A DNA stretch of 64,000 nt from Eutreptiella sp. 'Long Island Sound 2002' (Eukaryota; Protista; Euglenida): NCBI GenBank assembly GCA_964036045.1, contig OZ038379.1, positions 2,356,001-2,420,000 of the forward strand, written 5' to 3'. The notes beneath the pieces are model-generated. The model was not told the DNA's origin. It searched no databases and worked only from the letters and a program-made list of their open reading frames with translations. The position numbers and the translations under genes were made by a program. Positions 28,161 through 59,800 of the stretch are shown one piece after another (positions within the stretch are counted from its first letter, which is position 1; every line of letters begins with the position of its first letter).

Positions 28161-29616
28161 GAGGTGACTTGTGTGACACACAATCCACGGTTGCACCCAC
28201 ATTCCCATTGGTGCCCACTCCCCAATCCCAAGTTATCCGAAAAAATGGACAACACCCTCCACCCCAAACAGGCCACCACCTGGATCACATACCACACTCC
28301 CATCGACTCTGCAATGTGCTGGTGGAGCACCCTTTCACACTTCCCCACCACCACAACCCCAACAAGGCCAATTGCCAAGTAGCTTGGGAGAAGACCCCCA
28401 CCGGAAATCCCTCCACCACATCTTGGTGGTCTTGGGTAGCATCGTTGCATGTGACACCAGATGCCCGGAGTAGAGTGCGCACCGGGCCAGCACAGACTGA
28501 GAGAACCAAAGACCACTGAACCCCTCACCTCAGCAAGCTCTCACCCCAAATTCCTGAAGATTGGACGCCAAGCGAGAAGCACATGGCCAAACACCTGCAC
28601 TAGCGACTGCAAGACGCCAACAGGCACACCATCACAATATTGCGGCCCCCAAAGTGTCTATGCCAACAGCCCCACCATCTGGGGCCCGGTACCACCCTGG
28701 GGCTGCAAGGCCCACTGTAGGGATCCCCAGAAACTTTGCAAGGATCAGACCTCAGACTAGGACACTCCACAGCCGCAACCAAGCCAAACAAAGCAGTTTG
28801 GCCAAAGAGGAATCCCTGGAGCAGATCTCCCCAAGACATAAATAAATGCTCGCCACAAGGGTTTTGGCCACTGGCCAGCAGATAGTTTGTTTAGGTGCTT
28901 GTTTTTTTTTTGTTTTTTGCTTCTTCTTTTTTTGGCAGAAAATATGTAAAAAAAAACTGTTTGCATTTCACCACTGTTGTTTCTGTTCTTGTGAATGTGG
29001 CCTTGGGCCACTGGACCAAGTAGACGGGTCCATACATGACACCCCATGTCGAGAACGAGCGGGGAAAGAGAGGACGACCAGCTAAACAGCTTGCAAGGGA
29101 AATGTCATAGGGCAAGAAAGGGAAGACCCATGGCCGGCACACAGACGGGCGCTAGGGCCCGGAAAGGCACAGACCAGCAAGAAGTGGAGCACAACTGACC
29201 GCAGGAGTGGAACCAAGAGAGCCGCCCCCCGCATAGGGCAGAAGCATCCTCGCATTATCACAGGATGCAGCAATCCGGTGCAAGGCTGAAAGGCTGAAAG
29301 GCTGGGTCAAAACTTGCGATTGCTGGGCGACCTATGACAACCCCCAGAGACCCTTGGGCCGGGGTGGGGTGATCATTTGGTGACAACGGGAGTGCATGTA
29401 AACCCATGGGGGGCGGCCATTTTCTTTTGTTGTTGGGGGGGGGCTGTCAAGGAGGAAGGGTTGGGGGTCTGGACCCCCCCCCTCAGCCCCCACCCCACCC
29501 CCACTGGTCTCCAGTTGCTAAAAAGGACTCTGGGCGTCCCCCAATGGCATGGACTGCAATGGCATGGACTGCACCCTCCAGGCCAGTCTTTGCATCAAGG
29601 GCCACAGAATGTGCAC

Positions 29617-29853
29617 CTGCATGCCCACGTGCATCTCAATCTGGCGCGACTGCACTGCCTTGTACAGCAGCTGGAGGAACCTGGCACAGCTGACACTGCA
29701 CTGCGGAACCTTCTGGCCACTTGGCAGCTCCAGGGCACATTGCTTCCTGGAGACCACCTGGCCGCTGTCAGTGGCGAAGACCACCTCCTGAGGTTGGGCA
29801 GCAACGTCCAACAGCTTCTGATGGAGCCCCAGTTGCTGCAGCACTATGAACAC
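29617..29853 (-). CDS. FMO-class A monooxygenase fusion gene, exon 4
   Basis: Acceptor tgctag|GTG and donor CAG|gtgcac; 237 nt, phase 0/0. VFIVLQQLGLHQKLL...PQCSVSCARFLQLLYKAV...HVGMQ joins NIVPK (exon 3) to VTGFEQD (exon 5) as expected for class A hydroxylases. Confidence 0.85.
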
Positions 29854-32415
29854 CTAGCAGAGATCATGAAGATAGGGATGCAGGAGGGGAGCGGAGGGTG
29901 GTTAGGAGGAGAGGAGAAAGCTGGGCACTATAACCAAGAAGAGGGAACAGAGGAAGGATGAAGACAAAGGAAAATCACTTTTCGTCTGGCCTCGGGGATT
30001 GAGGTGTTGAGGCCAGTGGTGTGGAGAGCCTGCATCCCGATCCGAAGCCGAACACAGGAACAAGCAGAAAGTGAGAAAAAACGAGGGACAAGCAGACGAC
30101 AGAGAATGGCCATGTCAGGCAAAGATAAGATGGAGACAATACGCACAGCTCGTGGGAGGGGGCAGTGGAACACCAGCTGGGGGGGTGGTCACTGGCCACC
30201 TGCTCGCAGGTAACAGCCAAGTATTGTCGGCTTCCGGCCAAATCACCTGGCAGAGGGTGTTAAAAATCATGTAGGCACGCAGAAAGGGAAAACGCCACTT
30301 ACCTGCCTTTGAGGTGTATTTGATTGCACTTGCTATCCTTGGCCCTCACTGGTTTACTGCGCTGTACATGTGCCGCCGCATCCGACCACTATTGCTCCGC
30401 AACGCCACCCACTGTAGATGCTACTCTCTGCCACCATGGATGCTGCTCCTAGGCTGGGTGGCAGCAACATTAAACTGCAGTGTTGCAAAAGGGCCACAGG
30501 CAGCCACATGGATCTGCATCTTAGTGCAGTGCCAGGGAGGGTCAGCCAGTCCCCAAATCACCCCCCCCACCCACCCCTCGGGTCACTAAGCTACTGCAAT
30601 TGCATCCCCCCACTTGTCTCTTGCTACACCCAACCTGCTGCTTCCCCCCTCTCCAAGAGAGATGTCCCTAATGAGTATCATTCGTACAAAAAAAATCTGG
30701 ATATTTGGATTCTTAAGGATAGCCCTTGTGGGACTGCACCACAGAGCAGAATCGTTCTCGAACTGCAGCTGCACGGTCGGTGTGGGAGCCCCAAATCCAG
30801 GAATTGGGTGCATGGTGGCACAACGCAACACGACCACAACCCATATGCAACATAACACAGCACATTTCTAGTTCTCATTCATAGTCTTTGTATTCTGAGT
30901 AACCTGGCCAAACATTTACGGCCACAGGGTTACTTGCTTACCTCTAACAAAAAAAATTGACATCATCCTTGATGTTGTGTTGGGCTACAACTCCACATCT
31001 GCAGTCCAGATACATCTAGGATGTAAAAGGGTGTGTTTTGCAGCCTGTAGCCTTGCCTACTACTGGCCACGGCTCGTGAATTCACCAGTTCCACTGAAAA
31101 TGACTAACATGGGTCGGCTGAAAATTGCACTTTTTCTGGTGAGGCCAAAGGGTCCCTGGGGGATCATCAGGTGGTGGCTACACGCCAACCAAGTCTTGGG
31201 CACCACGGCAATTAAGCCCAAACTGATGCTACATCTATACATATGTATATTACTGCACCCCTCTCCTCTTAAATCCCGCCAAAAAGCAAGCAACAAGCAA
31301 GCAAGCAAGCACGTCACATTTCCGTTTTGGCCACCATTCCTTCCCAACGCTTCGGACTATACGGCACTCTCGCCATCCTAGAGCCTAGGTGGTGCTCTTG
31401 CGAAATCCAAGTTTTGAGCCCAAAGCTCAGCAGTGGCGATCCGGGGCAGGGGTGCCCAGTCGGGAGGTGCCCTCCCAAATCAGCGCAATTTGGGGCCCAA
31501 AACAGGCATTTTTTGCCCAAAGCAGCCCTAGAACCTGGTCAAAACGGCCAAATGAAGGGAAACGGTTGCTACATTACATGTGCGACTTGACTTCCTTGTG
31601 TCAAAGAGCCGTTTGGTGCCCTTCACTTGCACAATATGTCCGAGAAACGCCTCAATAGGGGCCCCAAAAGCCCAAAGCCCGCGTAGATCGGCCACAGCCA
31701 GCCCCAAACCATGCACAAGCCATATCTTGGGCTGCATGGCTCAAAATGCAATTCTGAGGGCACCTAATCCACGCGCAATCCCCCCTTTTTGTGGTTTCCA
31801 CCCCTCATAAGCACCCAAACAGACACCTGGACCCCCCGGCGGCAAACTGCAAGCTGAAGCCCAAACAGGTGGGTGCCAACCCGGGTCAATGGGGTCCACT
31901 CGGGGCAGAAAAATGACTTTTTGCACAAATGGTTTCAGACCACCTGGGATGCAAAAACAAGTGGTTTTAGCCCGTTTTAGCCTGTGGTGGCCAGGCTCAT
32001 CAAAGAACATCACCCACACACCAAGCCCGGCCCTCCACAAGGCGTACTTGCCTACAGCATGTTGTTTTATGGCTTGGGAGTGGTGGTTGAGCACGCATCA
32101 GTTGTTGTGCCCAGGAGTTGGACGCAGAAGCTGTGCCTACTACTTCTAGGCCCTCCGTATCAAAGGCCCCGTGCAGTGCCCCGCTGCATCGTATCTTGGA
32201 AGGGAGGGCAAAGGCAAAGGCAGAGTGGCCAGGGGATCTCTGCATCATCGTGCTGTGCTTATTATTCCCTTCCTATTCTGCAAGTGGGCACCCTGACGCC
32301 CAGGACAGCCGAGTGTCAGTGTTTCTCTTGCCCCACCCGAACTGGAGCACTTTGTTAAGCAACCGAGCGATCCAACCACTGAACCTGGTTTCCTGGTAGT
32401 GGAGGCAAGTATGAC

Positions 32416-35439: not shown

Positions 35440-37211
35440 CTGATCACAAAAAGGAGGCAGGAGCAGGGAATCGCTTGAAGGGAATCGCTCCGCCCCCAAG
35501 GTTCTGGCCCTGATTCCACCCCGAAGGCATTCCCTACCCCAACACCAGCCCCAACCGCGTTTCGAACCGCCAATAACCGCCTCCCAGCCACTTTCACGGT
35601 CCCCTGTAACCGCTCTGTGGCAGCTCTGGAATTGCCCCCATGCAGGGGGAGGGGGGGATATGGCGCTCACTGTGGGAAGTTTTGCTGCATGCTGCATCCC
35701 ACGGAGGCTGCCAAAAAGCCCTTTGGCAGGGCACAAAGGTGGGAAACGGCCCATTCATATGTCCAGTGTACCGCACTTGTCGGGGTTTGGAGGGGGCCAT
35801 CATCGGTCGCTGTGATCAGCTGCTGGTCTGCAAAAACAGCATTGGGGCTACTCGCTGTACATCAGCGCCGCTGTTGTCTTGTGCTAGCTCATGTCTCGTG
35901 AACGAGGGCCTGTGGGTAAAGCATACCACTTGCTTGCCACTCCACAACCGTATGTCAGGGGGCCTGGGTGAGGTGCATCAAATGGTCAGTAAGCTGAGCT
36001 GGATGTCCGTGCCTTGGTATGAGTTTGGGGAGGGGGGAGTGGACCATAAAAGTCAAGAGTTTGTTGGGGTTGTTCACCACCGCCACCATTTGGCAGCTTC
36101 TGCACCCCTAGGCCTCCACACGCAGCCAGGATCGGCGACGCTTTTTCACCTTCAGTCCTTCAGTCCACTCAGGACCATGCAGCGTAGAGAAGGGTACGTA
36201 TGGGCGATGTGGGTATGAGATTGGCCACTGACCCATGGCCATTGGCGGTTAGATCATGGCGGTTGGCGGTGCTGGTGGTTGCCCAACGCCGGTCAATACA
36301 TCCAGAAAAACGCACTTGTTCAAATTTTGTGGAGGAAACCCTCCGTTGCTGTGCCGACACTGAGCAACACAGCACATGGGTTGCTTGCTGTGCACCGATG
36401 CTCTGGGTCTTTTCCGTGGCACCAGGCCGAAAACAAAGGGCTGTGGGGGCACTGAATAGTCCAGTGAGCACGTGTGATGACCTGGTAGGGGCACAGCCGG
36501 AGTCGTGATTCACTGATCCCTTGCGCCACCCTCCCCGCAACACATTTCCCCCCACTCTTGCCACTGTGTCGGAGTCACACCAAATTCTGAGCACTGGACC
36601 ATATGTGATACATCTGTTCTGAAGTAGGCCCCAGGAAATGATGCAATTGTGTTGTGGACCAAACAGTTTATAGATGTATGGGGGGTGTAATAATGTAACA
36701 ATCACCTCAGAAACAAGGTGCTGTGGTGGGTGAAAGTTCGCCGTTTTTCGGAATGGGCGATACCAGCCATTCGGCCTGGCAAGGAAGACCCTGCACTCCG
36801 GACACATAGGGAGCACCCTGTGGTCTAATCTACCGGTGGGCTCATTGTACCACCGCCTAACGCACCAGTCCCCTGTGGATTATGGTCTTGCGCCCCCCCC
36901 CCCCCCCGTTTCGCACAGCCCCTCATTGCCGTCTGTCCACTGCAGTCTAATGGAGTGATCTGACGTAGTCGCCCGGTAGAGCGTGTGAAGTCCCTGAGAC
37001 AGCTGGCAGTTAGATCATGGCGGTGGGTGGTACTTGTGTTTGCCGAACGCTGGTGAGCGAAATCTGGTGCGTAAACCCCGGCGGTTGGGAATGAACCGAA
37101 AACGGGCGGCCGATAACCGCCAGCGATTGGCCGGGACCCGCCGGCCGAAGAGCGAAAGAGAACCTCCTTATGGAGAGCCCTGGTGTTGCAATGGGGTTGC
37201 GCAGACCGGAC

Positions 37212-38114
37212 CTGGGCCCCGTGCTGCTCAACGGCGACGAGGAACGAGTTGCACTTGGTCCCAAAGGCCCCGAACACCCCCAGACTGGCCCCCGCCGCCT
37301 TCGTGTGCTCGAGGACCGAGAGATTGTACTCCCCCATGCGGCGGAGCACGGGGTCACCGGAGCGAGAGTCCATCGTGGCCATGATCTTGGACAGCCACGG
37401 CCCCGCCGCGCGCGACATGCCCCACAGCACCCGGCCCGTTATCAGATCCGTATGCAGCGGGGGTCGATCCGGGCGCTCCCGCAGCCGGGGCACCACCCAT
37501 CCCGACCGGCTCCGGATTGACAGGTGAGTCTGCGCCGCCACCTTTGCGATCTCCAGTGCGATGTCGGACCCGCTTTCGCCCATCCCCTGCAGTACCACCC
37601 GCTGGCCGCTGAAAGCCCTGGCGGTGCGGTAGTCGGCGGTGTGCATGACGCGGCCGGTGTAGCGGTCCTGCCCGGGAACGGGAGCGGAAACGGGTCGGGC
37701 ATGCGTCCCGCAGCAGATAAACAGATTGGAAACCGTCCATGCCTCGTCGCCCCGAGCTCCACTGGTCCGGATGGTCCAGCCACCGCCTCCCTCCCGGTGC
37801 GTGCGCTTGACCTCCAAAACGCTGGTATTGAGACGGATGTTGCGCCGGATGCCGAAGTGATCCACGTATTCCTCCAAATACTGCAGATACTCAGCCTTGG
37901 TCCAGAACGTAACCGGCGATTTGCTGGGGAAATCCGAAAAAGTGGTATGGGCCGAGGAGCTCGTCATCTGCAGAGTGTCCCACGCCCACAGGAACACGCC
38001 CCCGACTCGGGCCTGGCGTTCGAAGCAGATCGGGTCATAGCCCGCCTGCTTCAGTTCCTTGCACACCACCAGTCCGGAAGGGCCAGCCCCAATAACGGCC
38101 ACGAGCTCTGGCAT
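37212..38114 (-). CDS. FMO-class A monooxygenase fusion gene, exon 1 (class B flavin monooxygenase, FMO-like)
   Basis: First in-frame ATG at 38114. FAD motif GAGPSG, FMO fingerprint YTGRVMHTADY and NADPH motif GMGESG. Donor CAG|gtccgg, phase 0. Confidence 0.9.
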
Positions 38115-38216
38115 TGGGACAACGGCCGCAGCTGCGACAAGAAGGACAGGACGGAGCACGTGCCACAATGCCAAACTCCAAAAGCGCGGTCCGATGGGGT
38201 CACCACCGTTCGGACC

Positions 38217-38728
38217 GCTATTGGGGACGAGAGGACCGGGACTTTACTAAAAAAAAAATAGGAATTGTTTGCCCATAACATTTGCTACGCCAACTGCCGG
38301 CGGTTGACCACCGACGAACGCCATGTGACCGCCGAACCATGCCAAAACCGCCGGCGGTGAACTGCCATCCGCCAAACCGGTGTGTTGACTGTCCTTCACT
38401 GAAAAACAAAAAAGAAAAAACAAAAGAGTGCCCCCTAGTGTACTTGTGTTGCTCTGCCTCATGCGTGTGCGGCTGTTGTTGAACCAACACGGTCACATAG
38501 CACAATGCCAAAGCACGCGGTCCGACGGGGTCCTCGTCATAAGACAAGCGGGTTGTTGGTCGTCGGTCGTCGCCTCCGCAGGAGAGAGGGGAAGGCGGCT
38601 TTTCAATGTAGGGGAGTGTGTCAATAGAGCCACCCAACCGGACCCCCGCTCAATTGACGGGGCCCACAAAATCCAACCCGGACCAACCTCTGGGCCTTAA
38701 ACCTTCATCAGCCAATCTCGTGCCCAAA
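38217..38728. repeat. Direct repeat A, copy 1 (about 512 bp)
   Basis: Essentially identical to 39690-40200; the ORF track shows identical peptides in both. Confidence 0.9.
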
Positions 38729-39689
38729 GGGGGTGCCCACAGTCGCAAGCGGTCGCAGGCGGTCGCAGGCGGTCGCAGGCGGTCGCAAGCGCTTGAGATG
38801 CCCTTTTTTGGCCAGAAACCCCCTTTTGAGGGCTCCATGCAGTAGTACTGCGGCTTGTGACCCGTCTACGCACATATTTTCTTGTGCTCTTTGCCATGAA
38901 AGTAGTTTTCACCAAAATTTTATTTCAACCGAAAAAAACGGTTTTGTACCCGAAAGTAACAATTGCACAGGCAAATGACGTCATGGCTATGAAAAAAAGT
39001 GACGATGGGGTCTAAAGGACCAAATTTTGCTGCCGTGGCAAATCGGTTCCTATTCCCATTATTGATGTTTGTCGTCGTGCACGTAAGGCCCAAAAAGTAC
39101 TTCGTGACCTTCATGCAAAAGCTTGGCGCAAAAATGGGTATCCCCCGGTGGCGTCACAATTTGATGTGCCACCGATGGTTGCCTGCGTCTTGCGTTCTTT
39201 TCATAGCCATCGTCTAGCACCCGAGGAAGAGGGGTACAATGACCACTAGGCCGTCTCAAGGTCGCCGGCGTTGCAAGGCATCTTAAATGTTCGAAAAGAT
39301 AGGAATGAGCGCACGCGCAATGCCCTACAAAAGGCGGACAAACAAAAGGGGCAAGCGACAGATCCAATGGAAGCTAACAATTAAAGGTGCGTGTTCATTG
39401 TGCCAAGTGGCAAAAGGCCAAGGCTCCTTGCATCCAACCGCTTGAGTTGACAATGAGGCAGGCAACAAGCCATTGGCAATGCTACTATTTAGTGCAAGAG
39501 ACAATTGTGATATGTCTTTCCTTCAATGGGTTAATGCATTGCACACTTGGAGGGACGGAGGGAGGGAGGCAGGGCGGGTTGGAGGGATTGGGGGAGTGAG
39601 TGTATGGGTTATGCCATCTGTAGACGTGTACGAAAATTTTCTTAAGCGGTCGCAGGCAGTCGCAGGCGGTCGCAGGCGGTGGGCACCCC
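38729..39689. mobile_element. Probable non-autonomous TIR element with (GGTCGCAGGC)n subterminal arrays
   Basis: GGGGTGCCCAC / GTGGGCACCCC inverted ends and 10-bp tandem repeats at about 38742-38790 and 39645-39680. No short TSD. Confidence 0.55.
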
Positions 39690-40200
39690 GCTATTGGGGA
39701 CGAGAGGACCGGGACTTTACTAAAAAAAAATAGGAATTGTTTGCCCATAACATTTGCTACGCCAACTGCCGGCGGTTGACCACCGACGAACGCCATGTGA
39801 CCGCCGAACCATGCCAAAACCGCCGGCGGTGAACTGCCATCCGCCAAACCGGTGTGTTGACTGTCCTTCACTGAAAAACAAAAAAGAAAAAACAAAAGAG
39901 TGCCCCCTAGTGTACTTGTGTTGCTCTGCCTCATGCGTGTGCGGCTGTTGTTGAACCAACACGGTCACATAGCACAATGCCAAAGCACGCGGTCCGACGG
40001 GGTCCTCGTCATAAGACAAGCGGGTTGTTGGTCGTCGGTCGTCGCCTCCGCAGGAGAGAGGGGAAGGCGGCTTTTCAATGTAGGGGAGTGTGTCAATAGA
40101 GCCACCCAACCGGACCCCCGCTCAATTGACGGGGCCCACAAAATCCAACCCGGACCAACCTCTGGGCCTTAAACCTTCATCAGCCAATCTCGTGCCCAAA
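39690..40200. repeat. Direct repeat A, copy 2; supplies the stop codon of the upstream hydroxylase gene
   Basis: Identical to copy 1. TAA at 40169-40171 lies within it. Confidence 0.9.
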
Positions 40201-42052
40201 GCAACCCAAACCCCATAGGCCCAAGGTAAATTTCTTCATGTATCAAGAACTTGACCTTCTCCGGAATGTCCAATTCGTACTGGCGCGTAAGGACATTGTT
40301 GTTGCGCTTTCCGGCAGCAATTAAGTTGAAAATTGGTTCTTTCTTCCCCGCCTTCCGCCTCTCCTCCAGCAACTGGCCTATGCCGATCTTATGTTCCACC
40401 AACTTCGATTTCACGAGTTCCTCTTGACAAACGACTGTTGTGGTGCAAGTGGCAAGGCAAGGGCCGTCGGTGGATTGAACGTGCAATGTTACTGCACGAT
40501 CCACGAATGTCCGATGTTCTGTATGTTTGTCCGCTAGTAACCCAGGCTGAGGAGTGGCCCTTGTGGTTGTCATCACAGGCCTGACGACGACACTTGTGTT
40601 AGTGAAAGCAGACATGGTGCGTTGAAGTGTCCCGTTTGCACCCAATAAGACTCTTTCAATCGGGGAGAAGTTTGCAAGCAGTTGGTTGTTGCTCCAAGGG
40701 ACTCTAGTTGCAAGACCCCCGCTATTTGAGTCAACCTGTTGAGACTTGCAAGAAGTGAGCGGAGGAGAACCAGCTTGGCACTTTGACAATGCTTCGAGAA
40801 GACCTTTACGATAGCTAATGGGAATGAGAACTTTCGTTGGAACTTCCTTTTGAACTTGGTCCATAACTTTCTCTGGTAACATCTTCCGGCAAGCAAGTTG
40901 CACCGAAGTGGCCACAGGGCGGCGGTTTCTTTCGTATTCGTTTAAGGCCATGGCAACATTGCTCAATCCGTTGGTACCAGGTGCATTCTTCGTGTTACGT
41001 GAAAAAGACGATGCAAGTTCCACAGCATCAAGCAAGGCCGTAGATGCTCCATTGGAACCCACTGGATACATTGGATGGGCAGCATCACCCAAAAGTACGA
41101 CTCTCCCGTCACACCACGAATCCAGTGGGTTTTTGTCAGACATTGGAAACGCGCGAATGGAGACCGCATTGCAAAGCAATTTTCGATGGTCAAGAAAGGG
41201 CAACCGGAAGCCTCCATTCGCCTTCTCCAGCTCCTCAGCAATTTCCTCGGCAGCCAGTGTTTTTTTGTGGTGGAAGTCAAGGTGGTCTTGGATTGAATGA
41301 TCCTCGGCGAGTTCAACCATAAAGTTCAACGCCTGCTTTTGACATTGGGTCGCTGCCGTTGGTTTCTTGAGAGGGTAGCAAACTAGCTTTCCTTTCGAGT
41401 TTCCGGCCACAACTATTGTTTGTCCGTCGAGAACTTTGTCGACAATGGCTGTGCCGCGATATAGAGTAATTCCACAGGTGATTTGGCCCGTGTCGCTCTT
41501 TCCTTTCGCTCGAAGCACAGCTTTGCGGATTCTAGAAGAAATACCGTCAGCTCCAATAACGACTTCGGAATGCATATCAAATTGTCTCCCATCGGCATGC
41601 TTGCATCGAAGACAAACGCTTTGTTCGGTTTGAGAATACGCCACCCCTTGTACACCGCGTTGTATGGTGCCAGGTCCGAGTCTGTCTTCGACAGCTCGTT
41701 CGAGAATTTCATGTAGCACTGCACGGTGAATCGATATCTGTGGGAATCCTGTTGCGTCGGCAGCTAGCCCTCTTGGCGACTTTGCAATGAGACGTCCGTC
41801 GCTGGTATAGTATTGTTGCTTTGTAGGCGCCCACCCATTTGCAACAACCTCTTCCATCAAGCCAATCTCGTTTAGCGCCCAAAGGGCATGGGGTTGCAAA
41901 TTAAGGCCGGCTCCGCGCCCCGCAAAGCCCACCGTCGAATGCTCTAGAATATCTATGTTTAGTTCCTAGAAGGGTAAACTACGCTTGTTTGCGTGGAGAG
42001 CGAGGGCGGTCGCGAGGCCTCCAATTCCTCCGCCAATGATGCATATCCTCAT
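40169..42052 (-). CDS. Class A FAD-dependent aromatic hydroxylase fused to a C-terminal chorismate-lyase-like domain; in-frame TAG at codon 29 (41966-41968)
   Basis: ATG at 42052: MRICIIGGGIGGLATALALHANKRSLPF*ELNIDILEH...GAGLNLQPHA. Motifs PQISIHRA, GADGISS and GDAAHPMYPVGSNGAS. C-terminal FSPIERVLLGANGTLQR...IGIGQLL...P.FNL...LTRQYEL...IHEEI. No introns. Confidence 0.8.
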
Positions 42053-44667
42053 TGTGGGATTTCTTGTCACTTGGTTTCTACAAGAATAAGAGTGATAGTT
42101 CAGAGGAGTACGGAATCGGAAATCAATTCAACCTCCGATGCTGTGGAGCATTTGGCGCTACCTATGTTCTTACTTCAAGGTGCAAACGAGAAATATACCA
42201 CGAGGTATCGCAAATAATTGACGAAATAATCCTGTACCTACCGGACATTACAAGCCAAAACTCCTCGGGAGCTTGGCTCACAGGTGACCAAAGGTGGAGT
42301 GCAAGGCAAGCGAGAGCAACAAAGCAATAGTGAGGTCGCGTTCACTCGGTGGTCGGCGCCACCACTTGCGAGTATACATGTGCGTTATACAAACTCAAAT
42401 AGTGCTACCCGTCGTCTACGGGAACTCACTCCCTCTACGCTTGGCATCTTTATCAAGTCGTGCCCTCGGTCGGTTTCCTCTTTTTGAGGTTGGGTACGTT
42501 GGGCTCACTCCCTCTAGCCTTGGCATCTTTACCAAGTCGTGCCCTCCATCGCTTTCCTCTTTCTGGGGTTGGGCAAGGCTACAATGGGCTTCGAGTAATT
42601 GAGCAGGCAGCAAACGGATATGCCACCGTCCCCCTTGGCCTCGCTACGAGTCGTGGCATTCAAGCAGGTTACGAATGTGTTGCCCACTGTTGTAAAATGC
42701 ATAAAAAATTTCGAATCTGAACACCCTCGAAATTGTGAGATCCGGAAATCGTGGTAAGTGCTTAAAAATTTGCATCCCTGTTCCCAGCTGCATCATTTAC
42801 CAAAGTTGCTGAGTAAATCGAAAAGTACCTTTGTTTGCATGCGTAACATGCACTCAGGTACGCATAGGGTGAAGGAGCAAAGGCAACACGTGACAACGAA
42901 GCAGCACACGAAGGGGCGCCTTGTCTGGGGTTCCAGCGCTGGTACGTGGGGGTACGGTAAGTTTCCGGCCGGGGTGCTTCCTAACATCCAAGCAAATGAT
43001 CAGTCCCGATCGAATTTGGAAAATTTCAGAAACGGCACATTTTCGATTTATATGAGCTCAGATGTATTTTTCAGAGAATACCTCAAAATACTTGTGCTGG
43101 ATCTGTTTGTCAAACCCCAAAAATCGAAATATCATTTCTTGTGCACCTCGATGTCGTTGCCATCTGCAAATCCATCAGCATTAGGCCCTCACAATGATAC
43201 CTCATGACCCTAGATAACAAACACATCAAGGCCTTTATTGGCATCATGAACCACACTGCCGTACGATTGTTTCGCAATACACGTGGTTGGGTTGCCCCCT
43301 TATGTCGCGAATTGTTTCAAACGATTTGTTCGCAAACTTTGTCATCTTACCATCGTGTTGATTTGTACCATATTGCTACGCCGTGCATCGAGACATTCAA
43401 GCAAAAAAAAAACGGACGTTGGCTCCACCCGTTGTCACAAATTACGCAACCGCGTCCTCATACCTCCGTGCAAGTGTGGCGGAACGATGGAATTCATAGC
43501 AAGGAGAGCTAAACACGATTGAGATCAAGAAAACAAACATTCAATTGGAGGGGTAAAATGCACAACTTCGTGTGATTCTCCGATTGTTTGGGAAATGGGC
43601 ATTGAGGTCTCTTTTTGGGTTCGGTTCATTCGTCTCAACGGGTCCATCTAAATTTACATTACTCTCGGTTGTTGCATGGAAGGAATGTAGTGGGCCAACG
43701 AGTCACGCACGTCTGAAGGTCGGTGGAGTCTCATTTCAAGAAGCCGTTGCACGGGTGGTCGACGGAGTGCACGCGGTCGGCTGTACCGCTCCCAAAAACC
43801 ACTCCCCGATTCTAGATTTGAATGTGTTTCGGCCGTTGCGCCTCCCATTGTCTCGACATGGATACCCTTGCCGTTGTTACAACTGTTTTCCAACGTTTTG
43901 GACAACGGGGGAAGGGGGGGGGTGGCACATATTTAGATCCCGGCTTTCGCCTTCCTTTACAGAGATCGCCCTCTAAAATTCCGACGAGCGCATTTTGTGC
44001 CTATCTAGTATGAGGCATGTAGAGATCCGGCTATCGAGACCATCCTCCTTTTTCAAACTCAAGGGTGTCCTTCGTCCCGGGTCGCTCCTCCATCCTTCCC
44101 GAGTCCGCTCATCACCGCCCACATGCCCCCGTTGTGCTACATCTACGTCTTGCCCGAAAAATCGGGGTGCGGCTCCGCAGCCTTCCACATGCTTCGTTGC
44201 AAGTTTTATTTGTTGACTTACGTAATTGGAATCCAATTGCCATCAAATTCGATGGCGGTTGGCGTGAGCAAGTAGTCTTTGGCACCAATTAAATTAAACG
44301 CTGTACCAAACGAATGTGCTATGTTGTACGTCGACAAAGGCATTTCCGAGACCATGGGGGGGGGGGCGGGGTGGGGAATGGTCTGACACCTTAGTGTTTT
44401 TTGGTTTGCAACTGGCGGCGCCAATTACTGCCCTTCCCGGGGGCGGGCGGGGGGGGTGCGTCAACCTCATAACTCCTCGGAACATGATCCGGAATTCTAC
44501 GCAGTTACGCAATTAGGCTTGTTACGCAGTCACAAGCCTTGTGAGTCACATGCTGAATACGCAACAACAAGCTCATCTTCGAAGTCACCACTATCCTCCA
44601 AGGCAAGGTGGTGGGCAGCACAATCTCAACTCAACTCAAGCGTTATGGCGTTTTCTCTCAATTGGGG

Positions 44668-44708
44668 CGTGTGTGTGTGTGTGTGTGTTGTGTGTGTGTG
44701 TGTGTGCG

Positions 44709-44745
<37 letters not shown>

Positions 44746-44748
44746 CGT
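44668..44748. repeat. (GT)n microsatellite
   Basis: Direct reading. Confidence 0.95.
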
Positions 44749-44844
44749 GTCCCCTTCAAGCACCGGCCCGGACCAGGGTGTGTCTCGAACAAACGACGAA
44801 ATGTGCGCCAAATGAGCAACGTATTCCGCCTCTTATAGGCCACC

Positions 44845-48248: not shown

Positions 48249-48546
48249 GTACTTCATGCATCTCCGTACTGCCTGCGGTGTGTAGTGGTAGCACACAGCT
48301 TCCTAACGATGCAGCCCGGGTTCAACTGCCAACCGTGGCTGAAGCTGGGGCAAGGGTGATCTGGCACTCCCATCGGGGACACCCGTCGCAAAGTCTGCCT
48401 GAACCTGAAGTGACGACACCCGTCCGCAGCAGATTTTTCGTTTCTTTTTTTCATTTTCCCTTGGGTCCTAGAAAGTGGAAATGATGGTAACAACTCCTAA
48501 CATCCCCCCGGTTTGGGACGGCAGGGCAGGGCAAGGTTCTCAGCAC

Positions 48547-48618
48547 TCCCGCGTAGTATAGTGGTGAGTATACCCGCTGGATGACTTGGGCGACCAGGGT
48601 TTGAATCCCTGCCGGGAG
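48547..48618 (+). pseudogene. tRNA-Asp-like sequence, copy 1
   Basis: TCCCGCGTAGTATAGTGGTGAGTATACCCGC...GGGTTTGAATCCCTGCCGGGAG. D and T arms retained; anticodon arm altered with no GTC; T-run follows. Confidence 0.75.
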
Positions 48619-48977
48619 GATACCTTTTTCTCTGCCCGTTTTGTTTATTGGTCCCTGAAACAACAAGGGGCGTCTTTTTGAAAGAGGGTCTCATGACTCT
48701 TTTTGACGGGAATGGCCTGTGTAACGGTGTGTAGTGGTAGCACACAGCTTCCTAACGATGCAGCCCGGGTTTACCTGCCAACCGTGGCTGAAGCTGGGGC
48801 AAGGGTGATCTGCCGTCGCAAAGTCTGCCTGAACCTGAAGTGACGACACCCGTCCGCAGCAGATTTTTCATTTCTTTTTTTTCATTTTCCCTTGGGTCCT
48901 AGAAAGTGGAAATGATGGTAACAACTCCTAACATCCCCCCGGTTTGGGACGGCAGGGCAGGGCAAGGTTCTCAGCAC

Positions 48978-49048
48978 TCCCGCGTAGTATAGTGGTGAGT
49001 ATACCCGCTGGATGACTGGGGCGACCAGGTTCGATTCCCCGCCGGGAG
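48978..49048 (+). pseudogene. tRNA-Asp-like sequence, copy 2
   Basis: As copy 1; B box GGTTCGATTCCC. Confidence 0.75.
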
Positions 49049-49425
49049 GATACCTTTTTCTCTGCCCGTTTTGTTTATTGGTCCCTGAAACAACAAGGGG
49101 CGTCTTTTTGAAAGAGGGTCTCATGACTCTTTTTGACGGGAATGGCCTGTGTAACGGTGTGTAGTGGTAGCACACAGCTTCCTAACGATGCAGCCCGGGT
49201 TTACCTGCCAACCGTGGCTGAAGCTGGGGCAAGGGTGATCTGGCACTCCCATCGGGGACACCCGTCGCAAAGTCTGCCTGAACCTGAAGTGACGACACCC
49301 GTCCGCAGCAGATTTTTCGTTTCTTTTTTTCATTTTCCCTTGGGTCCTAGAAAGTGGAAATGATGGTAACAACTCCTAACATCCCCCCGGTTTGGGACGG
49401 CAGGGCAGGGCAAGGTTCTCAGCAC

Positions 49426-49497
49426 TCCCGCGTAGTATAGTGGTGAGTATACCCGCTGGATGACTTGGGCGACCAGGGTTCGAATCCCTGCCGGGAG
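49426..49497 (+). pseudogene. tRNA-Asp-like sequence, copy 3
   Basis: B box GGTTCGAATCCC with a perfect T stem CAGGG/CCCTG. Confidence 0.75.
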
Positions 49498-49856
49498 GAT
49501 ACCTTTTTCTCTGCCCGTTTTGTTTATTGGTCCCTGAAACAACAAGGGGCGTCTTTTTGAAAGAGGGTCTCATGACTCTTTTTGACGGGAATGGCCTGTG
49601 TAACGGTGTGTAGTGGTAGCACACAGCTTCCTAACGATGCAGCCCGGGTTTACCTGCCAACCGTGGCTGAAGCTGGGGCAAGGGTGATCTGCCGTCGCAA
49701 AGTCTGCCTGAACCTGAAGTGACGACACCCGTCCGCAGCAGATTTTTCATTTCTTTTTTTTCATTTTCCCTTGGGTCCTAGAAAGTGGAAATGATGGTAA
49801 CAACTCCTAACATCCCCCCGGTTTGGGACGGCAGGGCAGGGCAAGGTTCTCAGCAC

Positions 49857-49927
49857 TCCCGCGTAGTATAGTGGTGAGTATACCCGCTGGATGACTGGGG
49901 CGACCAGGTTCGATTCCCCGCCGGGAG
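49857..49927 (+). pseudogene. tRNA-Asp-like sequence, copy 4
   Basis: Same variant as copy 2. Confidence 0.75.
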
Positions 49928-50294
49928 GATACCTTTTTCTCTGCCCGTTTTGTTTATTGGTCCCTGAAACAACAAGGGGCGTCTTTTTGAAAGAGGGTCT
50001 CATGACTCTTTTTGACGGGAATGGCCTGTGTAACGGTGTGTAGTGGTAGCACACAGCTTCCTAACGATGCAGCCCGGGTTCAACTGCCAACCGTGGCTGA
50101 AGCTGGGGCAAGGGTGATCTGGCACTCCCATCGGGGACACCCGTCGCAAAGTCTGCCTGAACCTGAAGTGACGACACCCGATTTTTCATTTCTTTTTTTC
50201 ATTTTCCCTTGGGTCCTAGAAAGTGGAAATGATGGTAACAACTCCTAACATCCCCCCGGTTTGGGACGGCAGGGCAGGGCAGAGTTTCCAGCAA

Positions 50295-50368
50295 TCCTCA
50301 GTAGTATATAGTGGTGAGTATACCCGCCGGATGACTTGGGAGACCAGGGTTCGATTCCCCGCCGGGGA
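50295..50368 (+). pseudogene. tRNA-Asp-like sequence, copy 5 (ends closest to canonical: TCCTC...GGGGAG)
   Basis: TCCTCAGTAGTATATAGTGGTGAGTATACCCGCC...GGAGACCAGGGTTCGATTCCCCGCCGGGGAG. Confidence 0.75.
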
Positions 50369-51180
50369 GATACTGTTTTTCTCTGCCCGTTTTGTTTATT
50401 GGTCCCTGAAACAACAAGGGGCGTCTTTTTGAAAGAGGGTCTCGATGGCAAGGGGAATGGGGGATTGGGGAAGGGTATGGGGGGGTCACCTGAGGATCCA
50501 GAATCCTCCCTGAGACGCATGACCAGCACCCCCCCCCCCCTGGCGTCATGCCAAACACCCCCCCCCCCCGGCACCGTGGGCATTTGTATGTTTTTTAATT
50601 AGGTCACCCCCCCCCCCGCACCGTGGGCAGGCAGCCTTTCTGGTCTTCGGGTGTGGGAGGGGGCAGCACGTCCGTGTCCCACCACGTGGCGATTTGGGGA
50701 CCAAGTCTGGTCACCTCATGACTCAGTCTACCACCCGCCGACCCAGGGTCTGCACTTTCAACACCTCCGGAGGTTATACGAGGCGCTTTGGAGGCCCTGC
50801 TCACGCTCCCGATGCGTTTGCGTCACGGCTCGAGGCAGGACGGACCGCCCACCGGGCAGCCAGCCTGGAGACCGCTGCTGGCGGGCGTTGTTTTTCATGC
50901 GTCTCTGAAGGACCCCCTTGACGCGGCGTGCGATACTCCGACTACCGCAGAGGGCGTCTGGGAGAGGGTTCGCATTCCTCAATCGATCGGATGTCCCGGG
51001 CCGCACGTGAGCGGCGCTGTTGTCTCAGGGCCATTTCCAAACCCCCGGCCATTCCTCATGTCATGAGGGCGCAGCCGTGGAATGGGCGCATGGCAACACG
51101 ACTGTGTGTCCTGCGGTGCGTTGCACGAGCGTTGGGGTGCTCAAGCGCCTCAAAACTCTCCTTTTCGCTGTTGTGTCCAG

Positions 51181-53372: not shown

Positions 53373-53804
53373 ATTGGCATCTGGTCTTTCGTCAAAGCGT
53401 GGGCACATACCTCACAAAAGAGGAGTGGCACCATGTTGGCAGTCCTGACTCTGAAAATTTCAGTATCCTCGATGAATTGGAACGCTTCCGAGACACCCGT
53501 GGGAAGTTCGTCTTCAAGATGTTGTTCCCAGACATGCAGGCCCCCAACTACAATGTGTGGAGCCAAATCAGCAACCCTGTGACTGCCACAAGCGGAGGGG
53601 TCGATGGATATGCGGCGATAGAGATCCATTTTGACTCTCACCATTGGGGCGGCTTGGAGCGGTCAGCTCGGGAGACGACCCTGCTCGATGGGTCTGTGCA
53701 CGAGTATTGGTGGTTCTATGCGGTTGGAACCACTATTCCGTTCTTTGGGGGTATTCCTGGTCCATCCAAAAAGGTTGACAAAGTGGAGCTGTACGTTTGG
53801 GAAG
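53373..53804 (+). CDS. GH30 gene exon: fibrinogen-C/lectin-like domain (acceptor could also be 53307 or 53346, all phase 1)
   Basis: WHLVFRQ...NFSILDELERFR...GKFVFKMLFP...NVWSQISNP...WGGLE...LLDGS...WWFYAVG...GIPG...VELYV. Donor GAAG|gtacgt, phase 1. Confidence 0.7.
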
Positions 53805-56800
53805 GTACGTGTTGTTGGCACCGCGCGGAACCCCTGTTTTCTGGCGTCACCTGTTTGACCCTCATCCGTCAGTCGTCCTGTGCAGATCTGTTTCAGGCGT
53901 TGGGCTTTGGGATGTTGGGTGTGCGGGGCTTCCACTTGCCGAGCCTTCCAATCGTCTGTCTGGCAGTCTTGGTCTCAGCAGTCTGTGTTCGCCAGCGCGG
54001 CTCCTGATGCAACAGCCTTTGACCCTTCAGCCGCTGACCAACCTCCCATGACTCTTCACAGCCGCGGACACCGGTCCAAAGCACCGGAACGACCCCGGGA
54101 CCGTCAACGGCCGTCAACGCCCCGCGAGCTTTCACAACCCTCAACAATGCTTGACATCCCTCGACAACCGTCAACACAACTACACAATCTCACGACCTCT
54201 GACGACCTTCTGCGACCGTCTATGGCTTTTAACATCGCTCTGCAGCCCTGAGTGATCCCCCGTGGACCGCCATTCGGCTCATGCAGGGGCAAAAGTTGAG
54301 AGTCGCTGACTGTTCCTGACTGCTCTTGCGTGGTGGAAGTTGTTTGGGGTGGTTGGTGCGTTTTTGAGGATCCTCCAGGATTGCCGAGGCTTGAGCGGCC
54401 AGGACGGTTAGCGTTGTGCGGGGTTGTTGATGGTCACTGAGCGGTGGGGCAGGTTGGGTAGGATTGTGCGGTGAAGGGATTGCTGGCGTGCTTTCTGCTG
54501 CACGAAAATGGGACCCCCTTTGACACCTCAAGTGCCACAATACTACCCCTCAGTAAAACTGACAAGTGGTTGCTTCTTCGGGCCAAATTGCCCAACAACC
54601 GGCATAATGCCACAACGTTTGTTGTAAACAAGACAACCACCACCTTGTCAGAAATTGCAGACCCATTTCCTGGCTCAGCACCATCTACAGGTGCTAGCCA
54701 TGTACTCCGCCATACCTCTCACCTTCTGCTAAAATGCCACCGTCGTCTGACAGCAATTGCATCTTCGTGGTCCTTACCTTAGACCTAAGTGCCGTCTCAA
54801 GTCCCAGTCCAAGCTCCAGCACAAGCCCATCTCCAACTCCGAGTCCCAGTCCCAGTCCCAGCCCCGGTGTGTCTGCCATGTACAGTTCTGAACGGTCGCA
54901 TGGCCTTGGCATGAGCCGCGCATTTGTCCGTAACGCCACTGTACGTGCAGGGGGTGGGGGCACTTGGGCAATTGCTGTTGCTTTGAGGGACCAACTAGCA
55001 CCCGAAACTAGCAAGGCACCATCTACAACAACCATGTGGGTTGGTTGAGCTCGTAACCCGCGAGCAGCCACGCATCTCCATGAGGCACGGAGGAAATACT
55101 GGAAGCTCCCCCATCAGGGGATGCCCGTGTCCAGGTTCCAAGTACGGTTACACACAAAAGCAAAAGCAACAGAAGTACCCAACATGACACCCATACCAAA
55201 GGACACTGCGTGATCCGCCGCCCCCTGACGCCGTGTTCCATTTCGACTCTCACCATTGGGGCGGCTTGGAGCGGTCAGCTCGGGAGACGACCCTGCTCGA
55301 TGGGTCTGTGCACGAGTATTGGTGGTTCTATGCGGTTGGAACCACTATTCCGTTCTTTGGGGGTATTCCTGGTCCATCCAAAAAGGTTGACAAAGTGGAG
55401 CTGTACGTTTGGGAAGGTACGTGTTGTTGGCACCGCGCGGAACCCCTGTTTTCTGGCGTCACCTGTTTGACCCTCATCCGTCAGTCGTCCTGTGCAGATC
55501 TGTTTCAGGCGTTGGGCTTTGGGATGTTGGGTGTGCGGGGCTTCCACTTGCCGAGCCTTCCAATCGTCTGTCTGGCAGTCTTGGTCTCAGCAGTCTGTGT
55601 TCGCCAGCGCGGCTCCTGATGCAACAGCCTTTGACCCTTCAGCCGCTGACCAACCTCCCATGACTCTTCACAGCCGCGGACACCGGTCCAAAGCACCGGA
55701 ACGACCCCGGGACCGTCAACGGCCGTCAACGCCCCGCGAGCTTTCACAACCCTCAACAATGCTTGACATCCCTCGACAACCGTCAACACAACTACACAAT
55801 CTCACGACCTCTGACGACCTTCTGCGACCGTCTATGGCTTTTAACATCGCTCTGCAGCCCTGAGTGATCCCCCGTGGACCGCCATTCGGCTCATGCAGGG
55901 GCAAAAGTTGAGAGTCGCTGACTGTTCCTGACTGCTCTTGCGTGGTGGAAGTTGTTTGGGGTGGTTGGTGCGTTTTTGAGGATCCTCCAGGATTGCCGAG
56001 GCTTGAGCGGCCAGGACGGTTAGCGTTGTGCGGGGTTGTTGATGGTCACTGAGCGGTGGGGCAGGTTGGGTAGGATTGTGCGGTGAAGGGATTGCTGGCG
56101 TGCTTTCTGCTGCACGAAAATGGGACCCCCTTTGACACCTCAAGTGCCACAATACTACCCCTCAGTAAAACTGACAAGTGCTTGCTTCTTCGGGCCAAAT
56201 TGCCCAACAACCGGCATAATGCCACAACGTTTGTTGTAAACAAGACAACCACCACCTTGTCAGAAATTGCAGACCCATTTCCTGGCTCAGCACCATCTAC
56301 AGGTGCTAGCCATGTACTCCGCCATACCTCTCACCTTCTGCTAAAATGCCACCGTCGTCTGACAGCAATTGCATCTTCGTGGTCCTTACCTTAGACCTAA
56401 GTGCCGTCTCAAGTCCCAGTCCAAGCTCCAGCACAAGCCCATCTCCAACTCCGAGTCCCAGTCCCAGTCCCAGCCCCGGTGTGTCTGCCATGTACAGTTC
56501 TGAACGGTCGCATGGCCTTGGCATGAGCCGCGCATTTGTCCGTAACGCCACTGTACGTGCAGGGGGTGGGGGCACTTGGGCAATTGCTGTTGCTTTGAGG
56601 GACCAACTAGCACCCGAAACTAGCAAGGCACCATCTACAACAACCATGTGGGTTGGTTGAGCTCGTAACCCGCGAGCAGCCACGCATCTCCATGAGGCAC
56701 GGAGGAAATACTGGAAGCTCCCCCATCAGGGGATGCCCGTGTCCAGGTTCCAAGTACGGTTACACACAAAAGCAAAAGCAACAGAAGTACCCAACATGAC

Positions 56801-59800
56801 ACCCATACCAAAGGACACTGCGTGATCCGCCGCCCCCTGACGCCGTGTTCCATTTCGACTCTCACCATTGGGGCGGCTTGGAGCGGTCAGCTCGGGAGAC
56901 GACCCTGCTCGATGGGTCTGTGCACGAGTATTGGTGGTTCTATGCGGTTGGAACCACTATTCCGTTCTTTGGGGGTATTCCTGGTCCATCCAAAAAGGTT
57001 GACAAAGTGGAGCTGTACGTTTGGGAAGGTACGTGTTGTTGGCACCGCGCGGAACCCCTGTTTTCTGGCGTCACCTGTTTGACCCTCATCCGTCAGTCGT
57101 CCTGTGCAGATCTGTTTCAGGCGTTGGGCTTTGGGATGTTGGGTGTGCGGGGCTTCCACTTGCCGAGCCTTCCAATCGTCTGTCTGGCAGTCTTGGTCTC
57201 AGCAGTCTGTGTTCGCCAGCGCGGCTCCTGATGCAACAGCCTTTGACCCTTCAGCCGCTGACCAACCTCCCATGACTCTTCACAGCCGCGGACACCGGTC
57301 CAAAGCACCGGAACGACCCCGGGACCGTCAACGGCCGTCAACGCCCCGCGAGCTTTCACAACCCTCAACAATGCTTGACATCCCTCGACAACCGTCAACA
57401 CAACTACACAATCTCACGACCTCTGACGACCTTCTGCGACCGTCTATGGCTTTTAACATCGCTCTGCAGCCCTGAGTGATCCCCCGTGGACCGCCATTCG
57501 GCTCATGCAGGGGCAAAAGTTGAGAGTCGCTGACTGTTCCTGACTGCTCTTGCGTGGTGGAAGTTGTTTGGGGTGGTTGGTGCGTTTTTGAGGATCCTCC
57601 AGGATTGCCGAGGCTTGAGCGGCCAGGACGGTTAGCGTTGTGCGGGGTTGTTGATGGTCACTGAGCGGTGGGGCAGGTTGGGTAGGATTGTGCGGTGAAG
57701 GGATTGCTGGCGTGCTTTCTGCTGCACGAAAATGGGACCCCCTTTGACACCTCAAGTGCCACAATACTACCCCTCAGTAAAACTGACAAGTGCTTGCTTC
57801 TTCGGGCCAAATTGCCCAACAACCGGCATAATGCCACAACGTTTGTTGTAAACAAGACAACCACCACCTTGTCAGAAATTGCAGACCCATTTCCTGGCTC
57901 AGCACCATCTACAGGTGCTAGCCATGTACTCCGCCATACCTCTCACCTTCTGCTAAAATGCCACCGTCGTCTGACAGCAATTGCATCTTCGTGGTCCTTA
58001 CCTTAGACCTAAGTGCCGTCTCAAGTCCCAGTCCAAGCTCCAGCACAAGCCCATCTCCAACTCCGAGTCCCAGTCCCAGTCCCAGCCCCGGTGTGTCTGC
58101 CATGTACAGTTCTGAACGGTCGCATGGCCTTGGCATGAGCCGCGCATTTGTCCGTAACGCCACTGTACGTGCAGGGGGTGGGGGCACTTGGGCAATTGCT
58201 GTTGCTTTGAGGGACCAACTAGCACCCGAAACTAGCAAGGCACCATCTACAACAACCATGTGGGTTGGTTGAGCTCATAACCCGCGAGCAGCCACGCATC
58301 TCCATGAGGCACGGAGGAAATACTGGAAGCTCCCCCATCAGGGGATGCCCGTGTCCAGGTTCCAAGTACGGTTACACACAAAAGCAAAAGCAACAGAAGT
58401 ACCCAACATGACACCCATACCAAAGGACACTGCGTGATCCGCCGCCCCCTGACGCCGTGTTCCATTTCGACTCTCACCATTGGGGCGGCTTGGAGCGGTC
58501 AGCTCGGGAGACGACCCTGCTCGATGGGTCTGTGCACGAGTATTGGTGGTTCTATGCGGTTGGAACCACTATTCCGTTCTTTGGGGGTATTCCTGGTCCA
58601 TCCAAAAAGGTTGACAAAGTGGAGCTGTACGTTTGGGAAGGTACGTGTTGTTGGCACCGCGCGGAACCCCTGTTTTCTGGCGTCACCTGTTTGACCCTCA
58701 TCCGTCAGTCGTCCTGTGCAGATCTGTTTCAGGCGTTGGGCTTTGGGATGTTGGGTGTGCGGGGCTTCCACTTGCCGAGCCTTCCAATCGTCTGTCTGGC
58801 AGTCTTGGTCTCAGCAGTCTGTGTTCGCCAGCGCGGCTCCTGATGCAACAGCCTTTGACCCTTCAGCCGCTGACCAACCTCCCATGACTCTTCACAGCCG
58901 CGGACACCGGTCCAAAGCACCGGAACGACCCCGGGACTGTCAACGGCCGTCAACGCCCCGCGAGCTTTCACAACCCTCAACAATGCTTGACATCCCTCGA
59001 CAACCGTCAACACAACTACACAATCTCACGACCTCTGACGACCTTCTGCGACCGTCTATGGCTTTTGACATCGCTCTGCAGCCCTGAGTGATCCCCCGTG
59101 GACCGCCATTCGGCTCATGCAGGGGCAAAAGTTGAGAGTCGCTGACTGTTCCTGACTGCTCTTGCGTGGTGGAAGTTGTTTGGGGTGGTTGGTGCGTTTT
59201 TGAGGATCCTCCAGGATTGCCGAGGCTTGAGCGGCCAGGACGGTTAGCGTTGTGCGGGGTTGTTGATGGTCACTGAGCGGTGGGGCAGGTTGGATAGGAT
59301 TGTGCGGTGAAGGGATTGCTGGCGTGCTTTCTGCTGCACGAAAATGGGACCCCCTTTGACACCTCAAGTGCCACAATACTACCCCTCGGTAAAACTGACA
59401 AGTGCTTGCTTCTTCGGGCCAAATTGCCCAACAACCGGCATAATGCCACAACGTTTGTTGTAAACAAGACAACCACCACCTTGTCAGAAATTGCAGACCC
59501 ATTTCCTGGCTCAGCACCATCTACAGGTGCTAGCCATGTATCTCTCACCTTCTGCTAAAATGCCACCGTTGTCTGACAGCAATTGCATCTTCGTGGCCCT
59601 TACCTTAGACCTAAGTGCCGTCTCAAGTCCCAGTCCAAGCTCCAGCACAAGCCCATCTCCAACTCCGAGTCCCAGTCCCAGTCCCAGCCCCGGTGTGTCT
59701 GCCATGTACAGTTCTGAACGGTCGCATGGCCTTGGCATGAGCCGCGCATTTGTCCGTAACGCCACTGTACGTGCAGGGGGTGGGGGCACTTGGGCAATTG

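Follow-up and report, generated by a model that had tools for sequence, protein, structure and literature searches.

The stretch analysed here, a 64,000-nucleotide segment of contig OZ038379.1 (assembly GCA_964036045.1; positions 2,356,001 to 2,420,000 of the forward strand) from the euglenid Eutreptiella sp. 'Long Island Sound 2002' and referred to below as the window, carries on its minus strand a fusion gene that joins an N-terminal flavin adenine dinucleotide (FAD)-dependent hydroxylase resembling PhzS to a C-terminal domain of the chorismate-lyase/DUF98/UTRA fold (Table 1). Several lineages of uncultured eukaryotes conserve and express this architecture. Both of its domains are of known kinds; the architecture itself and the eukaryotic DUF98-like branch that supplies the C-terminal domain are new variations on them.

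Table 1. Position of the fusion gene, its constituent parts and the adjoining direct repeat within the window
Feature	Position	Strand	Basis
Whole fusion gene, ATG to stop; intronless, one in-frame stop near the 5' end	40169..42052	-	Translation, list of open reading frames, alignment with intact relatives
N-terminal PhzS-like group A FAD-dependent monooxygenase domain; GxGxxG, GADG and GDAAH motifs	40766..42052	-	Pfam, PDB, NCBIfam, conservation
Variable linker, about 24 residues	40694..40765	-	Weakly conserved alignment columns; equivalent stretch of P0002 predicted to be disordered
C-terminal chorismate-lyase/DUF98-fold domain, about 155 residues; mostly eukaryotic family	40223..40693	-	Homologues, 2nwi profile match, AlphaFold (AF2) model, Foldseek, hhalign
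Last 10 codons and stop of the fusion gene, from repeat copy B	40169..40201	-	100% identity to 38697-38729
Repeat copy B, abutting and overlapping the 3' end of the fusion gene	39688..40201		Sequence identity
Repeat copy A, 515 bp	38215..38729		Sequence identity

Translation of the fusion gene from its ATG to its terminal stop gives a frame of 627 codons, in which both domains are read in the same phase with no stop between them. Among the first ~30 codons there is a single in-frame TAG, which falls after the GxGxxG motif and cuts it off from the remainder of the protein; the longest uninterrupted open reading frame (ORF) of the gene accordingly covers 40169-41932 (587 aa). The preliminary description, made from the letters of the window, had spoken of a complete class A hydroxylase with a C-terminal extension: the frame does encode a hydroxylase and, after it, some 180 additional residues, but the word complete has to be withdrawn, as the TAG separates GxGxxG from the 587-aa ORF. 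At the aligned position all relatives continue without a stop. The 28-codon piece on the 5' side of the TAG carries GxGxxG and aligns with the N-terminus of P0002, an intact fused relative, at 14 of 19 identical residues; since the N-terminal domain of P0002 in turn matches PhzS from end to end, the TAG falls inside the FAD-binding beta-alpha-beta unit rather than 5' of the true start. The TAG aside, the window copy retains 72 of 74 highly conserved positions in the N-terminal domain and all 16 of those in the C-terminal domain.

Neither a tiny intron nor a variant genetic code accounts for this TAG. The only GT..AG candidates around it measure 17 and 30 nt: removal of the shorter one breaks the frame, and removal of the longer one deletes part of the conserved beta-alpha-beta unit, which is colinear in the relatives. 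Freeing TAG or TAA hardly lengthens the ORFs of the window. Freeing TGA lengthens them in all frames alike, because TGA is more than twice as frequent as the other two stop triplets in this TA-poor DNA (1908 occurrences versus 814 and 862). The genetic code of the window is thus the standard one.

The N-terminal domain is readily recognised by profile methods. Against Pfam, residues 12-344 of the 587-aa ORF match FAD_binding_3 (PF01494) at 58.5 bits, above the gathering cut-off of 22, and among solved structures the ORF aligns over almost its whole length with PhzS (PDB 2rgj, 3c96; E 8.6e-48). The best-matching NCBIfam model is NF005720 (E 3e-82), which scores 276.6 bits with the window ORF and 310.3 bits with P0002, below its curated cut-off of 400. 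Residues 6-398 of P0002 align with residues 7-371 of the 402 in PhzS (E 1e-57). Of the FAD/NAD(P)H motifs, GADG (the DG motif) and GDAAH (the GD motif) are present in the window translation and in the alignments, whereas GxGxxG, which in the intact P0002 and L007 runs on unbroken into the remaining sequence, is cut off by the TAG in the window copy. Many of the top solved relatives in the PDB search are decarboxylating hydroxylases of hydroxy-aromatic acids. The comparison with PhzS of Pseudomonas aeruginosa, a 5-methylphenazine-1-carboxylate 1-monooxygenase, reveals the same single-component FAD monooxygenase layout and the same motifs, although identity is only ~35%, and PhzS and its bacterial relatives (~410 aa), unlike the window gene, lack an extra C-terminal domain. 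Scans of the window ORFs found no phenazine genes near the fusion gene. Among the fused relatives, the L007 lineage (P0005/P0359; L007 61-1995) is noticeably divergent around the GD (GDAAH) FAD motif and keeps only 70 of 86 highly conserved hydroxylase positions, together with 16 of 16 in the C-terminal domain.

For the C-terminal domain, a phmmer search with the last 183 aa against 1.84 billion representatives recovered 84 proteins at E<=1e-3, whereas no match emerged when metagenomes were scanned with this one domain sequence. Most of the 84 relatives are stand-alone proteins of 145-215 aa, and named examples belong to the chytrids Polychytrium and Phlyctochytrium, to Neoconidiobolus, to the labyrinthulids Hondaea and Mucochytrium, and to MMETSP protists; one JGI record labels its member 'chorismate-pyruvate lyase'. 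A domain scan of ten longer family members (327-518 aa) found no partner domains. In an alignment of 33 sequences (A4, numbered by the C-terminal domain), R23, G30, Q33, R75, G115, Q116 and P129 are invariant, and G113, R146, Y148 and E162 are nearly so. All five motifs quoted from this region in the preliminary description are present and coincide with columns of A4 that vary little or not at all, an agreement far beyond chance.

Several members of the family are set apart by their N-termini or their genomic surroundings. The stand-alone eukaryotic proteins P0178, P0195, P0196 and P0199 begin with hydrophobic, signal-peptide-like stretches that, judged from their sequences, would fit complex-plastid or secretory targeting. 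Small members (145-173 aa; L012 8001-8438, corresponding to P0197, and the contig of P0161) are found on gene-dense, phage- or plasmid-like contigs, which carry ParA, an N6/N4 methylase and many small ORFs without assignment. One small member on a prokaryote- or phage-like contig lies directly downstream of YjbQ and a polyprenyl-synthase gene, an adjacency that would be expected of a supplier of a quinone ring precursor.

Evidence for the fold of the C-terminal domain comes from several directions. The A4 profile has a single match in the PDB, 2nwi_A (E 9.5e-10; profile positions 29-169 on chain residues 3-168), and this alignment keeps the Arg, Gly, Arg, Arg..Tyr and Glu positions of the family. 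An AlphaFold (AF2) model of the domain built on A4 reached a predicted local distance difference test score (pLDDT) of 85 and a predicted template modelling score (pTM) of 0.81. When this model was submitted to Foldseek, 2nwi again ranked at the top (TM 0.64/0.73, E 2e-5, root-mean-square deviation 2.8-3.2 A, 18% identity), followed by four entries of Escherichia coli UbiC (1jd3, 1fw9, 1g81, 1g1b; probability 1.0, TMq 0.46-0.49, 12-16% identity) and then by UTRA domains (PhnF 3f8m, YvoA 2wv0, YydK 3bwg, DasR 9i0v; probability 0.9-1.0, TMq 0.42-0.47). UbiC binds 4-hydroxybenzoate through Arg76 and Glu155 together with the backbone amides of Met34 and Leu114 (PMC7879144). An hhalign comparison of A4 with E. 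coli UbiC places R75, L117 and E162 on Arg76, Leu114 and Glu155, at a probability of 30% and E 5.5e-4, with the Met34 region outside the aligned range. In every fused member that spans the complete domain, R75, L117 and E162 are unchanged; of 25 stand-alone proteins, all have R75 and E162, and 18 have L117. The domain therefore has the chorismate-lyase/DUF98/UTRA fold by profile search and by structure prediction with Foldseek, and the hhalign match to UbiC, though weak, is consistent with this. The UbiC/DUF98-type fold proposed from the letters is borne out by the model, the Foldseek ranking and the 2nwi profile match, none of which points to a different fold.

Comparison with the three known groups of this fold places the window domain closest to DUF98. 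AF1396 of Archaeoglobus fulgidus, the protein of entry 2nwi and a member of DUF98 (PF01947, 'Rv2949c-like chorismate pyruvate-lyase'), is both its best structural match and its sole sequence match in the PDB; at 18% identity, however, the two differ in that the window domain is eukaryotic and fused to a flavoenzyme, and AF1396 is itself without a demonstrated function. UbiC shares the fold, and the low-probability hhalign alignment would put its product-binding Arg76, Glu155 and Leu114 at the positions of the invariant R75 and E162 and of L117; it is a stand-alone bacterial enzyme whose gene adjoins ubiA, in contrast to the fused window domain, for which no match to the Pfam model PF04345 was found. 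UTRA domains share the superfold and, like the window domain, are C-terminal appendages to another module, but in the GntR/HutC regulators this partner is a winged-helix DNA-binding domain and in the window gene a flavoenzyme.

The two-domain architecture, for which the preliminary description had suggested a search, recurs in other organisms. P0002 (650 aa), which is 53% identical over 97% of the query, was recovered from RNA-type data sets, where five contigs of 2.1-2.5 kb carry it; L007, a JGI contig, encodes a 644-aa ORF with both domains; and clusters at 90% identity contain further fused members of 619-653 aa. Independent contigs from at least six samples (ENA, Logan, JGI) each carry one uninterrupted ORF of 644-653 aa across both domains, and spliced transcripts place the fusion in three or more uncultured, marine lineages of eukaryotes. 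The evidence for splicing lies in L008, a version of the P0002 gene whose C-terminal domain is interrupted by 155 additional nt bounded by GT..AG. Since L001 lacks this segment, it represents spliced mRNA, and the owners of the gene are eukaryotes. No fused protein comes from NCBI, UniRef, MMETSP or EukProt. Among all representatives searched, no other protein joins the C-terminal domain to a hydroxylase, and the fusion is thus confined to one narrow clade. A literature search for lyase-hydroxylase fusions, for the eukaryotic family, for DUF98 in connection with chorismate lyase and for Rv2949c returned no relevant paper; the earlier impression that this is not a described fusion accordingly stands, in that none of the papers searched, including the one on engineered UbiC and MNX1 (PMC11440761), reports a natural fusion of the kind.

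A full-length model of P0002 informs on how the two parts are joined. Most 10-residue blocks of both domains have pLDDT values of 80-97, the linker (residues 436-458) and the tail (625-650) fall below 50, and the overall pTM is 0.68. This predicted structure fits two domains on a flexible tether. A fixed channelling interface was considered and set aside as unsupported, given the predicted disorder of the linker and the pTM of the whole protein.

The 3' end of the window copy is bound up with a 515-bp direct repeat. Its two copies are identical save for one A in a poly-A run, and no further copies occur in the window. With 958 bp between them, they delimit a unit of 1987 bp (38215-40201), which on one side adjoins the 3' end of the fusion gene and on the other is followed by the 5' end of an FMO-like ORF. 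Homology of the fusion gene to its relatives stops just upstream of the repeat, past the conserved domain; only a non-conserved tail has been displaced. Short GGTCGCAGGC-like tandem runs mark the inner edges of the repeats, and no clear target-site duplication was seen around the pair; the unit may be a small terminal-repeat element or a local duplication. Given the premature stop within the FAD-binding fold and the repeat-derived 3' end, the likeliest account of the window copy is a gene copy or allele that lost its function very recently; an assembly error is less likely.

Taken as a whole, the window has a eukaryotic appearance, with only 29 ORFs of at least 180 aa in 64 kb and a TA-poor, TGA-rich composition with satellites and microsatellites. 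An Rfam scan of the window returned no match, and the single tRNA-like call is doubtful and could be assigned no type. When 20 other long ORFs were scanned against Pfam, 17 showed no domain, the exceptions being the FMO-like ORF, a GH30-like ORF and a SAM-domain ORF. The FMO-like flavin monooxygenase ORF (36825-38174, minus strand) lies just past the repeat pair on the same strand as the fusion gene, thereby placing two flavin monooxygenase genes side by side. Only its first ~230 residues match the family (profile 4-225 of 532; relatives are ~574 aa long), and the rest of the gene is either in other exons or degraded; its best outside match, at 47% identity, is from Tetraselmis sp. GSL018. On the 5' flank of the fusion gene, a 79-bp unit is repeated 1.9 times at 42425-42573, and a long (GT)n-type microsatellite follows further upstream at 44650-44800. 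Larger repeats comprise a satellite at 48383-50443 (430-449-bp units, 4.7 copies, 93% matches) and a tandem array at 53600-60400, which consists of at least four copies of a ~1612-bp unit at 99-100% identity, with ORFs recurring at the same period; a further partial copy of this unit is found about 4 kb downstream, at 63000-63800. Between 22000 and 32000, a sustained positive AT skew (0.10-0.22) over ~10 kb sets this region apart from the rest of the window, and the ORF at 29377-29961 within it has no Pfam domain.

Taken as a functional unit, the fusion could be a two-step aromatic enzyme that eliminates pyruvate from chorismate or a similar compound and then hydroxylates the product, which of the readings considered here is the likeliest, though about as likely wrong as right. 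The C-terminal domain, as a predicted lyase, would remove the enolpyruvyl side chain of chorismate or a close analogue to yield a hydroxybenzoate, a step that would rely on the conserved Arg and Glu aligned with Arg76 and Glu155, which bind the product in UbiC. Hydroxylation of the lyase product by the tethered flavoenzyme would follow, with NAD(P)H and O2, and the carboxylate may be lost at this point, as happens with PhzS, salicylate hydroxylase, 6-hydroxynicotinate 3-monooxygenase and 4-hydroxybenzoate 1-hydroxylase. Proximity, rather than a fixed tunnel, would link the two activities. The lyase step is suggested by the conserved Arg/Glu pair and by the Foldseek ranking of DUF98 over UbiC and of UbiC over UTRA; the two-step scheme is further suggested by the decarboxylating relatives of the N-terminal domain, by the polyprenyl-synthase neighbour of a family member, and by engineered chemistry in which UbiC and MNX1, a 4-hydroxybenzoate 1-hydroxylase, convert chorismate via 4-hydroxybenzoate to hydroquinone (PMC11440761). 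That route has the same order of reactions as the one proposed here, in that the product of a chorismate lyase passes to a group A decarboxylating hydroxylase, but it is an artificial pairing of separate proteins from different organisms, whereas the present fusion is natural. Of the bifunctional enzyme envisaged in the preliminary description, either substrate-generating or substrate-channelling, the substrate-generating version is thus the better supported, though inferred, and the version with fixed channelling finds no support in the model.

Several observations weigh against the two-step scheme. As a single sequence, the last 183 aa match nothing in Pfam (at E<=1), NCBIfam or the PDB. The Pfam family that bears the lyase name, PF01947, is matched weakly by 3 of 45 relatives (best E 0.0019) and fails to reach the window domain and the other 42; no other Pfam domain was found in the stand-alone relatives scanned. 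The alignment to UbiC is weak as a sequence comparison, in both its probability and its lack of cover for the Met34 region, and the link of the domain to characterised lyases is weak in general. On the hydroxylase side, a score under the curated cut-off makes membership of the window protein in the named NF005720 subfamily, and with it the nature of the substrate, uncertain. The closest relative of the intact fusion, the P0004 type (75% identical to P0002), is a hydroxylase alone: its gene, carried by a genomic scaffold of 7.9 kb from Tara Oceans, terminates at a genuine stop just past the hydroxylase, and the 6 kb that follow contain no detectable C-terminal domain. It follows that the two parts can be separated and that the hydroxylase can stand by itself. 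The predicted flexibility of the linker likewise counts against any version of the scheme that depends on a fixed interface. Finally, the fused proteins start directly at the FAD-binding strand with no obvious targeting peptide, and chorismate is made in plastids in algae.

Some of these points would suit a different role for the C-terminal domain, that of a UTRA-like module without catalytic activity that senses or holds a small aromatic or carboxylate and thereby modulates or feeds the hydroxylase. The effector domains of PhnF, YydK, YvoA and DasR are clear structural matches (probability 0.9-1.0, TMq 0.42-0.47), the hydroxylase of the closest relative exists without the domain, and catalysis by the family is a prediction only. 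Yet DUF98 and UbiC outrank every UTRA domain, the only PDB profile match is to DUF98, the positions aligned with the product-binding Arg and Glu of UbiC are invariant, and most family members, as stand-alone proteins of 145-215 aa, have no partner to regulate; we therefore consider a purely ligand-binding role unlikely. The domain might instead be a lyase that acts on another enolpyruvyl compound, for instance converting isochorismate to salicylate or using an amino-deoxychorismate, with the hydroxylase acting on the product in the manner, for example, of a salicylate 1-hydroxylase. Its low identity to 2nwi (18%) and UbiC (12-16%), which makes it only a distant relative of lyases with a characterised activity, the family's own invariant residues R23, Q33, Q116, R146 and Y148, and the presence of salicylate hydroxylases among the solved relatives of the N-terminal domain would all accommodate such a change of substrate. 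Nothing specific indicates isochorismate, however, and the sole characterised reaction in the fold, as judged from the literature and the name of the Pfam family, is the conversion of chorismate to 4-hydroxybenzoate, which leaves a different substrate improbable in our view. That the fusion might be an artefact, with two adjacent genes merged by mis-assembly or read-through, is suggested by the origin of the window contig (3.78 Mb; ctg10968_49x_l) in the ENA metagenome assembly ERZ25074135 and by the internal stop of the window copy. It is contradicted by the uninterrupted ORFs of 644-653 aa in at least six samples and by the single frame in which both window domains are read without a stop between them, and its probability is very small indeed.

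The two-step reading, if correct, bears on how eukaryotes make aromatic ring precursors. According to reviews, UbiC homologues are missing from yeast and from mitochondria (PMC8231959, PMC5714133). It is possible, if rather doubtful on present evidence, that many eukaryotes (chytrids, zoopagomycetes, labyrinthulids and algae) hold a chorismate lyase of the DUF98 type that has diverged too far for current domain models to detect, and that in one uncultured marine clade this lyase is fused to a PhzS-like, possibly decarboxylating hydroxylase, so that chorismate would be converted to a dihydroxy-aromatic compound, either hydroquinone or a ring precursor of the protocatechuate type, within one polypeptide. 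Because Pfam and NCBIfam miss the C-terminal domain, both the family and its fusion are invisible to routine annotation. Fusions of this kind tie two activities to one pathway, here a largely eukaryotic branch of the chorismate-lyase fold and the hydroxylation of an aromatic ring. Should the lyase prove active, it would provide eukaryotes with a chorismate-to-hydroxybenzoate step that the coenzyme Q literature holds to be absent from them, and the fusion would be a natural counterpart of the engineered lyase-plus-hydroxylase route.

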